From the NCBI GenBank assembly GCA_964035545.1, contig OZ037771.1, positions 14,879,133-14,943,132 on the forward strand: a stretch of DNA of 64,000 bases, written 5' to 3'. Both the position numbers and the translations under genes were made by a program. Source of the DNA: Bugula neritina. Taxonomy: Eukaryota > Animalia > Bryozoa. Below are positions 38,531-60,244 of the stretch, piece by piece. The notes under the pieces are model-generated. The model was given only the letters and a program-made list of their open reading frames with translations. It made no database searches and had not been told where the DNA came from. How positions within the stretch are numbered: position 1 is the first letter of the stretch; every line of letters begins with the position of its first letter.

Positions 38531-40430
38531 ATAGGAAAGCTGGCAGAAGTATCATTTGTGTGTAAGTGCAATAAAGTATATATATATATAGCTTGAAAAT
38601 AAAGTAAATTTACTGTCAATATAACAAATACAAGAACACTAAATTTTCTGAGATGCTTTGAAGACAGAACTCGAATTACTGAGTTTTATGTGTTGCAAGA
38701 AAACCAGCGACAATTTGTAAGTAATAAACTTTTACACTAATTTTTGACTATGGTAAATTTTGACTGTATAAGTTAAAAAAAGTTTAATTCTGTTTTTTAA
38801 AGCTTTTTGATAGAAAACTATGGTTGTTGCTTAAATAGTTTTATACTAAAAGAAGGTACATATAGCTAAAACTAAAAAAGGTTTAAATTATATGTTCTTT
38901 AATATTACTTCTATTGATAATTGTTGCTGTTTCTTTGCTCTATTACCATATAGAAAAAAAGTCATCACTCACTTTTTTAGCTAAATAAATCATCTATAAG
39001 TAGCATGTCAAAGGACTATAAAGAATAAATTAAACCAATGCCTAATTATTGCTATAAGGTGCGTATTTTTAACATTTTATTTTAATTTGTAGGTGCGCTT
39101 CTAGTTGTAGATCTTATACAAGAAGGTTTGGCTGATTGTAAAATATCTTCATTTGTTATACTTGTAGCTATAATACGGTAGAGCATTGAAACTCTTAAAG
39201 TTTATTCTTACTTTTAGATTAGTACAACGGTTTAAATCGAGTATGATTTTTCATGATGGTTTTGTGAGTTGTTATATAAACAATGCGGTTTTTTTCAACT
39301 CAGTATGCTGCAGGAAAACAACAGTATTCTGCTATAAGCTAATGACTTTATTTAAATGCATAAACATACTTTTGTTTTAGTACAAAATTGTGTGCACGCT
39401 GTTCCATGTTATGACATAAAAGAAGAAGGCTGCATTGAATGGAAGAAAGATGTTTGCACGAAAGAAAGTTTTGTCTTAATACTTCTACTGATGCAGTGAA
39501 AGCTTAAGTGCTCAAGAATGTGAGTAATATATAGCAGATAAATGTTTTGTTTTAAGACTATGCTCTTTATTTCCTGTTATTCTTTAAGCTAGCATTAGTA
39601 GTTTCTACACAAATTACTGGTCTAAGTTGGGAAAACATTTTGAGCCTATACCAACTATATTTGGGATAAAAGCTTTTGCTTTCCAAGCAGCATTTTATAT
39701 GACACAATTTGAAAATATAAATTCAAACATAGCTGCACCAGTTACTGCTGTACTCACAACAAGTGGAGCTGACAGTATGGTATGTTTTCACTGTTTCACT
39801 GACCTTGCATCAAGTGCAAAATGTTCGCCTACATGTGGCACTGGTACTGGTAAAAATGGTCCTGGCAGACTGGAGTGTGAATCCAGATTTTTTTCTTTCT
39901 AGTTAGGCATCAACTCACTGCATTAAAAATAAAGAGGACTAGCTATTATTAATGTTTTTACTTTGAAACTAAGATATTTCCCCAAAATTTAATATTATTG
40001 TAGGCATGTCCAACACCAGCACAGGCAGCAAACAAGTGCACGTGGGGAACATATAGCTCATGTATGGCAGGCGCTTGAGTCAATGTCAACAAAATTGCCA
40101 TTGGAGTTTAAGGCTAAACAAATGTGTGTGCAACTGAGTGTTCGGCATAAGCCTCATTCTACCTGTCCTGGATCTGTCACAAGAAGTTCAACCTGCTAAA
40201 CGGTAAAATTACCACTTTGATGATTTCTGGTAAATTATTGAATTCAGCTTGATTTGTACAAAATATTAATATGATTAAAGCTATAGAACAATTTTCATAG
40301 TTGAAATTCTTCACATTATAATTTGTTGCAGATTTGCCAAATCTATAGAAGTACGGTAGAGGTAGAGGTAGAAGTAAATGGAAATGTGTTAAAGGTAGAA
40401 AAAGACACAACTATAACAGAATAGGAGCAG
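38531..40430 (+). pseudogene. Pseudogene paralog A of the secreted TSR/basic-tail gene family
   Basis: Exon homologues are 38531-38561 (ATG replaced by ATA), 39093-39137, 39381-~39519 (6-Cys module, frameshifted), 39733-~39901 (CSPTCGTGTG), 40004-~40202 (TSR with several stops) and 40332-~40430 (basic tail, frameshifted). No exon 4 homologue was found. Confidence 0.85.
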
Positions 40431-41765
40431 TTCATTTACCCTCACTACCCATCTTAATTTTACTGAAATAGATTAATGCACTATGACTATAATTATATCT
40501 GAAACACTATAATAATTTAGCTAATTATTTTGAACTGTAGCCCCAAAGTTAAATGCTAAACAGATTTTCTTTGAAACTACTTCAAATAATATTCTAAGTG
40601 CTTTTCAAACAAGACAAAGTTTGTTTACTATTTTTATCTTTTGTAATTTACCAATCACTTTATAAAAACATATAATTATGATTATTATTAGTCTTTAGGT
40701 TAACTGCAATTTGAAATTTAATAGCTTTAGCATATTATACTTGTCTCAATAGGTTTATAGTAAATTAAAACATAATGCAAACAATAAAAATTTTTGCTAT
40801 GCCTATATTATTAAAAACAGCAAATAAAAACTATTCAAATCAGGGTGTGTAAAGTACAGAAAGTTGAGAGAGTTTATTCACATCTGATAGTTTTAAAAGT
40901 GGTTTGTGATAGTTTGCCAAAATAATATCCTTTGCAGGATGCCTGCTGAAAAAAAGTTTATCCTCAGAATTGAAAACCTGAGCCACAAATTTATTTAGTA
41001 ATAATTTAATTAGAAATAGCTACCGCAATTATGAATTTTTTTAAATGAGTCATATGCATACACATAGACACATGAAAGCAATTTTCAAATATAGAAAAAT
41101 TAGTTATAGCAAATAAAGTTGTATCTTCAAAAACTGTATAAAATAGATACTTTTGAATCTACCAAAGCCATAATATCTTTTTGAAGTTGAAGCAAATATT
41201 TTGCGTTCCTTGTTTAAAGAAAAAACAGTATAAGCTAGTACAATTATGAGCAAAATTTCAATCTTTAGCATTGTTCGAGACAACTACTGAAATATTTATC
41301 ACTTGTAATGTGCTATAGTCCGGTGGAAATATTGGGAAATGTAAATAATGTGAACATATAGCCAATGGCAATAAATAACTATGAGTAATGCAATGTCTGT
41401 TTTGTGAGGTATAAGGTAAAACAACTCCCAATGCCTTTAAAATGAAATCATTTTGCCACAGTGCATACCAAATGTAGCCGTAAAACAGCAATAGAAATGG
41501 AAGCTTCAGCAAATGAAAATTGTATTTACATATTTGATCTGACTACCATCACTTTTCACCAACCTACAGAACACCCTTTATAATAAATAAAAGATAAATC
41601 TTCCTACTTACTGAAAAATTTCTAATTATTTTCTCATCTAAGTTATGAGAAATTACAATATCCCAACAACTCCAAAAATAGTGCACAGAATATGTATTTT
41701 GACTTTTCAAATATGTTCTTAAAGGAGTTGTCCCGCTAATGCTTGGACATAAAAGATAGTGATGC

Positions 41766-59700: not shown

Positions 59701-60244
59701 ACAGTTTACAAAAAGATGATGCATCAACAGCCAAATCATGGTCAATGGCATTATTGTTAACTATATATAAACAAGTTTAATTGATTTTAAATAAAAAAAT
59801 AGGTGTTTTCTCTTCATAGTTTTATTAATTGTTATTTTACATCTAAAACTTTAGGTGAAAGTTTCAAAATATAGTAGATGTTGCACTAGTGAGAAACTTA
59901 TGCTGTTTTAAATAGGACTTTCATTTTTAGTAGTGAGATATAAGATTAAGTCACAACCGCACAAGTCTAAGTCAAAAGAATTGTCAATTGAATTCTGATC
60001 GTAATTAATTATTAGGCATTACAAAATAATGGAGTAAATTGTTTTATGTTTTATGTTTTTTATGTTTCTATCTTAACCACAGGACTGCCTACCTTCAACT
60101 AGGATTATTGGTGGTAGGCCTCAAAGAAGAGGAAGAAGCAAACTAAAGCAAAGGAGAAGAAAACAGCAACAGGCCAAAAAACGCCAACGTCGAAGTAAAA
60201 AGAAAAAAAGAAGTAGGCGAAGAGACAAAAAGCAAAAGCTTTAA
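56748..60244 (+). CDS. Gene C: paralog of gene B, secreted TSR protein with Thr/Ala/Pro linker and Lys/Arg-rich tail (7 exons, 363 aa)
   Basis: GT-AG exons 56748-56769, 57168-57212, 58181-58315, 58434-58577, 58703-59103, 59501-59683 and 60083-60244 give a stop-free 1092-nt frame. Features are the signal peptide MNTEAIFMSLLVIIMLKMSTA, the TSR WCDWAPYEPC...TQRRKRVCAC and the same intron phases (1,1,1,1,0,0) as gene B. Exons 1-2 are less certain. Confidence 0.85.
58108..58171. repeat. (TA)n tract just upstream of the exon 3 acceptor of gene C
   Basis: Read directly. Confidence 0.95.

Follow-up and report, generated by a model that had tools for sequence, protein, structure and literature searches.

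Introduction

R-spondins (RSPO1-4) are secreted proteins in which a Cys-rich N-terminal part is followed by a thrombospondin type-1 repeat (TSR) and then by a polybasic C-terminal region. Midkine and pleiotrophin, proteins with TSR-like half-domains, carry basic tails and bind heparin, and binding to microbial surfaces is known for the TSRs of properdin, BAI1 and mindin. The TSP/BR domains of R-spondins bind heparan sulfate proteoglycans (PMC7239654), and lophotrochozoan shell-matrix proteomes often contain TSP_1 domains (PMC13425148). The locus analysed here lies in a 64,000-nucleotide stretch (the window) of the genome of the bryozoan Bugula neritina (assembly GCA_964035545.1, contig OZ037771.1, positions 14,879,133 to 14,943,132 of the forward strand). 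An earlier note, made from the letters of the window, had proposed three same-strand paralogs of a secreted Cys-rich family at 38531-60244, and the three copies, A, B and C, are indeed all on the + strand. Our results indicated that B and C are intact genes for predicted secreted proteins with a Cys-rich head, a Thr-rich stalk, a TSR and a polybasic tail, that A is a decayed pseudogene, and that the family is lineage-restricted and fast-diverging.

Gene structure and selection

Frame-by-frame translation and comparison of the paralogs gave seven exons without an in-frame stop for both B (44791-47418, + strand, product of 356 aa) and C (56748-60244, + strand, product of 351 aa). All introns of B and C are GT-AG with the phases 1,1,1,1,0,0, and identical phases were found in Z, a paralog 21 kb upstream of the window whose seven exons correspond to those of B and C and give an open frame of 356 aa. 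The open frames and the GT-AG borders at every intron of B and C support the gene models. Read from the sequence, B and C are therefore intact 7-exon genes, in agreement with the two complete frames and identical intron phases proposed earlier, and the proposed end coordinate, 60244, is correct as the last base of the stop codon of C. The predicted products are of ~35 kDa with an isoelectric point of 9.3-10.2. The features of B and C are as follows.

44633..44790, + strand: promoter and 5' untranslated block of B, 78% identical to the equivalent block of Z; the next intron is unalignable
44791..44821, + strand: B exon 1, ATG and 10 signal-peptide codons; donor GTAAGT; phase 1
45656..45703, + strand: B exon 2, predicted signal-peptide hydrophobic core and cleavage region (...TLA/D, the slash marking the cleavage); phase 1-1
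45995..46138, + strand: B exon 3, 6-Cys module; phase 1-1
46227..46346, + strand: B exon 4, 1 Cys and the conserved PAIFG motif; phase 1-1
46482..46831, + strand: B exon 5, N-glycosylation sequon, 3-Cys segment, Thr-rich stalk and 7-Cys module TSRa (CSPTCGTG); phase 1-0
46938..47135, + strand: B exon 6, thrombospondin type-1 repeat TSRb with WCNW, TRTRE and 8 Cys; phase 0-0
47239..47418, + strand (coding to 47415, then TAA): B exon 7, polybasic tail with a C-x8-C loop
56748..56769, + strand: C exon 1 (tentative), ATG and 7 codons; donor GTAAGT; phase 1
57168..57212, + strand: C exon 2, predicted signal-peptide core (...STA/V); phase 1-1
58181..58315, + strand: C exon 3, 6-Cys module, beginning right after a (TA)32 microsatellite
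58470..58577, + strand: C exon 4, 1 Cys and the motif PARFG
58703..59103, + strand: C exon 5, NTT sequon, 3-Cys segment, Thr/Pro/Ala stalk and TSRa (CSSSCG)
59501..59683, + strand: C exon 6, TSR with WCDW, QRRKR and 8 Cys
60083..60244, + strand (coding to 60241; TAA 60242-60244): C exon 7, polybasic tail

In B, a TATAAAA sequence is present at 44720-44726, 70 nt upstream of the ATG, and an AATAAA at 47652, 234 nt past the stop.

Exons were joined by a local script only for the frame check, the paralog alignment and the ratio of non-synonymous to synonymous substitution (dN/dS); database and fold searches were carried out exon by exon. At the protein level B and Z are 56% identical, and B and C 37%. 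In the three-way alignment of B, C and Z, however, all framework Cys columns (25/25) and both Trp columns (2/2; WCNW or WCDW) were invariant, and the predicted mature proteins all have an even number of Cys (26-28). The strong divergence of B and C over fixed Cys, Trp and intron positions, as described in the earlier note, was thus borne out. The dN/dS between paralogs, which had been suggested as a check, was 0.51 overall for B and Z and 0.18 in TSRa, and it exceeded 1 in no region of this comparison. The proportion of synonymous differences (pS, 0.46) was above that of non-synonymous differences (pN, 0.29), ~4.9 standard errors apart by arithmetic on the substitution counts. Introns 1-4 and 6 of B and Z aligned at ~50%, no better than random, while the exons were still recognisable. 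A different pattern was seen at 46564-47142, where identity to Z (L007:7955-8532) is ~80% from the 3' part of exon 5 through intron 5 and into exon 6; this tract probably reflects gene conversion between the tandem paralogs. From these comparisons we concluded that B, C and Z are real genes, moderately constrained by purifying selection and encoding proteins with a predicted rigid disulfide framework.

It could be argued that the family is decaying or unexpressed and that B and C owe their open frames to how recently the family was inactivated. In favour of this, A and its twin (see below) are pseudogenes, constraint is relaxed (dN/dS about 0.5), and no transcript-derived protein was found among the public protein collections searched. 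Furthermore, C has no recognisable promoter: a conserved promoter motif was sought for C exon 1, also in the closest paralog (11.9 Mb), and none was present among the output examined. However, B, C and Z have diverged to 37-56% identity and still retain all Cys in open 350-aa 7-exon frames, pN is significantly lower than pS, and B and Z share a conserved promoter block next to an intron that is not conserved. We consider such decay very unlikely.

Signal peptide, N-terminal module and stalk

The N-termini of B, C and Z reach a maximum 9-residue hydropathy of 2.7-3.2 within the first 20 residues, and small residues occupy positions -3 and -1 of the predicted cleavage sites (TLA/D, SFA/D and STA/V). 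Exons homologous to B exon 2, ending in [LF]AD, are present in A and Z. A hydropathy scan found no transmembrane-like window in the proteins after the N-terminal core. Exons 1-2 look like a signal peptide, and the proteins are predicted to be secreted.

The predicted mature proteins begin with a 10-Cys module of ~130 residues, which is spread over exon 3, exon 4 and the start of exon 5. Its Cys spacing is conserved, in exon 3 as C-x5-C-x7-C-x7-C-x5/8-C-x9/10-C, and it carries the short motifs PAIFG and I-x-Y-x-F-x-x-C. When the exons of this module were searched one by one, no match was obtained in Pfam, in a PDB profile search or in Atlas. An AlphaFold2 model of exon 3, built on a 6-sequence alignment, had a predicted local distance difference test score (pLDDT) of only 52 and was discarded. 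The 10-Cys head could represent a new small extracellular fold.

The head is followed by a stalk in which Thr accounts for 17/29 residues in B and 21/29 in Z, while the stalk of C has 16 Thr, 9 Pro and 10 Ala among its 47 residues; the Thr-rich stalk predicted earlier is thus present in both B (17/29) and C (16/47). B, C and Z all have what defines a mucin-like linker, namely a Thr/Ser/Pro-rich low-complexity segment in a predicted secreted protein, and the stalk is predicted to be O-glycosylated.

The TSR of exon 6 and the module of exon 5

A Pfam search covering all exons of B and C, and paralog exons as well, returned a single domain, TSP_1 (PF00090) on exon 6; the domain search advised in the earlier note thus identified exon 6 and left the other exons without a Pfam match. 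Taken singly, exon 6 of B and of C falls just below the Pfam TSP_1 cut-off (for B, E 0.0025 and 18.4 bits; cut-off 21.6 bits), and the TSR of Y, a further upstream paralog, passes it (32.1 vs 21.6 bits). A profile of six family exon 6 sequences matched properdin at 6.7e-28 and TSP-1 at 1.5e-22 in end-to-end domain alignments. Exon 6 shares with the properdin and TSP-1 repeats the N-terminal CP, WxxW, the Arg layer and the Cys pattern over its full length. B and Z share the Trp ladder WCNW, while C has WCDW and Y has WCTWSSW; both Trp columns are invariant. The Arg layer of exon 6 reads TRTRE, RRTRT or RRKRV. Of the 8 Cys of exon 6, 6 align with Cys of properdin. Judged on this alignment, exon 6 is a true thrombospondin type-1 repeat, as had been claimed from WxxW and RxR. 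It differs from the repeats of properdin and TSP-1 in having two Trp only, in an extra Cys pair (W-C-x-W and C-x-C) and in SPC-x3/6-C, which replaces CSxTCG. Properdin itself is made of TSRs only, unlike the proteins described here.

The second module, TSRa in exon 5, has seven Cys and keeps CSxTCGxG. Against PDB sequences it gave local matches only (E 0.006-0.011), the best being the circumsporozoite protein (CSP; E 0.006), and hhalign assigned a probability of 48% to its match with the exon 6 profile. The AlphaFold2 model of TSRa (pLDDT 84) shows a helix and then a beta-hairpin after CSxTCG, which recalls the helix-plus-TSR layout of the Plasmodium circumsporozoite alpha-TSR. However, this model had only noise-level matches in Foldseek against PDB, in the VIA second look, in VIA wide and in the Atlas shape search; TSRs of CSP, midkine, BAI1 and F-spondin occur among these noise-level matches in the Foldseek list. 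The reading of exon 5 as a degenerate TSR is therefore unproven: CSxTCGxG is kept, and sequence and fold searches gave no confirmation. The CSPTCGTG motif, which the earlier note had reported for B, is present in B but also in A.

The basic tail and comparison with R-spondins

In exon 7, Arg and Lys make up 30/59 residues of the tail in B and 27/53 in C (~51%), in line with the earlier estimate of about half; the tails have 0-2 acidic residues, and none in B. The last exon is purine-rich (window 47234-47437; also in Z) and has two open frames, one poly-basic and one poly-acidic (Glu/Val/Asp). The acidic frame, open in B and Z, was rejected, since the phase-0 splice gives the basic frame only. 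The basic frame was also preferred because its xC start and C-x8-C loop are kept in Y, Z, B and the downstream paralog D. The C-x7/8-C loop of the tail is conserved in these four and absent in C.

The order of signal peptide, Cys-rich N-terminus, TSR and basic tail resembles that of R-spondins, and one of their features, a TSR followed by a basic C-terminal region, was found here as the exon 6 TSR and an exon 7 with 51% Arg and Lys. The proteins could be divergent R-spondin-type WNT modulators. However, Pfam detected no furin-like repeat at E up to 1 in B and C (exon 3, exon 4 and the 5' portion of exon 5) or in exon 3 of Y and D, and the exon 3 profile matched no furin-like PDB chain, the N-terminal module being searched exon by exon. 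The Cys spacing of exons 3-5 differs as well. Furthermore, the family has a mucin-like stalk and a CSxTCGxG module in addition, it is tandem, fast-evolving and lineage-restricted, and its member D has no TSRs. R-spondin identity was rejected because furin-like repeats, the defining feature, were not found, and we regard this alternative as highly improbable. The R-spondin analogy of the earlier note holds for the TSR plus basic tail, but as a functional analogy only.

Possible function

Taking these modules together, we consider a secreted glycoprotein tethered to polyanionic glycans the best working reading and put its chances at about even. After secretion, polyanionic glycans on cell surfaces or in the matrix would retain the protein through its TSR and polybasic tail, much as the TSP/BR region of R-spondins is bound to heparan sulfate proteoglycans (PMC7239654); the predicted O-glycosylated stalk would extend the rapidly diverging N-terminal module, which in turn would carry a paralog-specific binding function. 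The genome encodes a DPY19 homologue and two O-fucosyltransferase (O-FucT) loci, so that WxxW and CxxTCxxG may be C-mannosylated and O-fucosylated, respectively.

Several observations speak against this proposal. The dN/dS of 0.45-0.75 in head and tail means weak constraint there. C exon 1 is the best candidate and remains tentative. The tail has furin-type R-x-[KR]-R sites (7 in B, 2 in C) and could be removed as the protein passes through the secretory pathway. Protein databases returned only unspliced open reading frames (ORFs) for exon 5 queries. Finally, D has a head, a stalk and a basic tail but no TSR, indicating that the TSR is not essential to the core function of the family.

Two other roles are live rivals and are inseparable from glycan tethering on the present evidence. 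One is humoral defence or microbe handling, in which tail and TSR would bind or damage microbes and the variable head would recognise targets; tandem birth and death would then reflect an arms race or symbiont management. The fast divergence over a fixed Cys framework, the pseudogenes, the segmental duplication and the gene-conversion tract, as well as the strongly cationic nature of the proteins and the microbial binding known for properdin, BAI1 and mindin TSRs, are in favour of it. On the other hand, dN/dS exceeds 1 in no region, and the exon-wise searches of Pfam, PDB profiles and Atlas found no similarity to a known antimicrobial family. We rate a defence role as possible, though unlikely. 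The other is a structural or adhesive part of the cuticle, larval glue or extracellular matrix, in which the disulfide-rich modules would be cross-linked or packed and held by charge. Secreted mucin-like and TSR modules are typical of matrix, and TSP_1 is frequent in lophotrochozoan shell-matrix proteomes (PMC13425148). However, the proteins have no Tyr/Gly/His-rich or other repetitive structural motifs, the copy number is low, and divergence is faster than in most structural proteins; this role likewise seems unlikely to us, if possible.

A more specific version of the tethering proposal would be a diversifying recognition system, in which a new-fold head, found in Bugula-type bryozoans only, would read microbial, symbiont or conspecific ligands while parked on sulfated glycans by an alpha-TSR-like module, the TSR and a protamine-like tail. 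We consider it doubtful.

Family extent and lineage restriction

Six-frame searches of the whole 216-Mb assembly found family members only on contig 7. They form a tandem array on the + strand, with Y and Z upstream, A, B and C in the window, and D ~29 kb downstream. A second group lies at 11.90 and 12.19-12.21 Mb of the same contig and includes C2, the closest relative of C, whose exon 6 is 84% identical in DNA. The family therefore reaches past the three paralogs of the earlier note (A, B and C) and past the window. Y lacks the stalk but has a canonical WxxWxxW / CSVTCG repeat. In D (window coordinates ~92980-94296, outside the window; L022 ~9113-10000 and beyond), the head is followed by a short stalk and an Arg-Gly tail, which share one terminal exon, and the tail ends in C-x7-C. 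D has the appearance of a deletion product in which stalk and tail became joined.

On the minus strand, a ~2.8-kb tandem unit occupies 18525-33435 of the window; its copies at 27358-30642 and 30155-33435 are 96% identical, and the copy at 18525-21102 is 87% identical to them. Each copy contains an exon-3-like Cys-rich fragment on the minus strand (19044-19169, 28016-28222 and 30816-31022), and a solitary, more B-like exon-3 fragment is present at 21824-21952. These exon-3-like fragments are probably family gene fragments or pseudo-exons copied with their surroundings. A tandem birth-and-death gene family, partly within the window, is the best explanation of the locus.

With exon 5 as the query, a full HMMER pass through 1.84e9 representative proteins gave three hits at E <= 0.001. 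The best-scoring of the three (P0001, 8.8e-28), a repetitive 1450-aa protein, was judged to be a spurious bacterial match and was discounted. Real relatives are limited to P0002 and P0003, both of them unspliced ORFs on Bugula-labelled Joint Genome Institute (JGI) contigs. Two word-indexed searches of 5.8e9 proteins with the exon 5 ORFs of B and C returned nothing further. The names of the JGI contigs carrying homologues include AY690838, which is the accession of the B. neritina mitochondrial genome (PMC2678162). One JGI contig has 73% DNA identity to the best locus of the assembly, so it comes from another lineage or from a paralog without a counterpart in the assembly. The JGI contigs L010-L012 (samples 3300003318 and 3300002729, from a Bugula-associated 'metagenome') are host DNA with tandem C2-like members, and L010 has a stop inside exon 3. 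The lineage-specific, fast-evolving character proposed earlier agrees with these results, as only Bugula-labelled relatives were found among 1.84e9 proteins and B and C are 37% identical. A lineage-restricted, fast-diverging family is thus supported by the sequence searches. A search of the literature found no paper on the family.

Copy A and the surrounding DNA

Copy A was confirmed as a paralog, but the start proposed for it, 38531, is no start codon (the ATG is at 38520), and the copy is a pseudogene. Its remnants are listed below.

38520..40471, + strand: copy A, decayed pseudogene
38520-38561, + strand: exon 1 remnant with 11 extra nt; TAG at 38532, 4 codons in
39093-39137, + strand: exon 2 homologue
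from 39381, + strand: exon 3 remnant, ending after the 4th Cys
39645-39899, + strand: fused exon 4/5 remnant, second Cys module deleted
40004-40196, + strand: TSR exon with 3 stops and a frameshift
40349-40471, + strand: short tail, shortened

An inverted twin of A lies at 12.19 Mb of contig 7, 2.7 Mb away, and is 94.8% identical over 36771-40796 with the same stops and defects. Since the twin shares these defects, A was already dead when the segment (~4 kb or larger) was duplicated. This recent inverted segmental duplication (36771-40796) takes in a fragment of a long interspersed nuclear element together with pseudogene A. A twin of the exon-3-like fragment at 21.8 kb lies at 12,210,342 of contig 7, and the duplicated segment may therefore be about 20 kb.

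The window is AT-rich (~30% G+C), with many microsatellites and retroelement pieces. Reverse-transcriptase ORFs of non-long-terminal-repeat retrotransposons (580 aa and fragments) are present at 23284-25026 (-) and 35037-37941 (-), with duplicated ORFs at about 34.3-38 kb, and the G+C-rich blocks of skewed composition are due to these ORFs. Very long microsatellites were found at 52897-54168, (TAAG)~317, and 49824-50247, (CA)212. The (TA)32 at 58108-58171 abuts the acceptor of C exon 3.

Implications

The findings do not bear on any long-standing open question. This combination of modules has not been described, while its one recognisable domain, the TSR, is very common. If the recognition system described above were true, the exon 5 module would be the first alpha-TSR-type domain outside Apicomplexa. 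Genes of this kind escape ORF-based or homology-based callers and would be of value for annotation if they are expressed. The paralogs also provide a natural series for the part of the TSR and the basic tail in glycan anchoring: head, stalk and tail; the same with two TSR-type modules; and a TSR-type protein without the stalk. If expressed, they would represent one more lineage-specific secreted family in a bryozoan genome.

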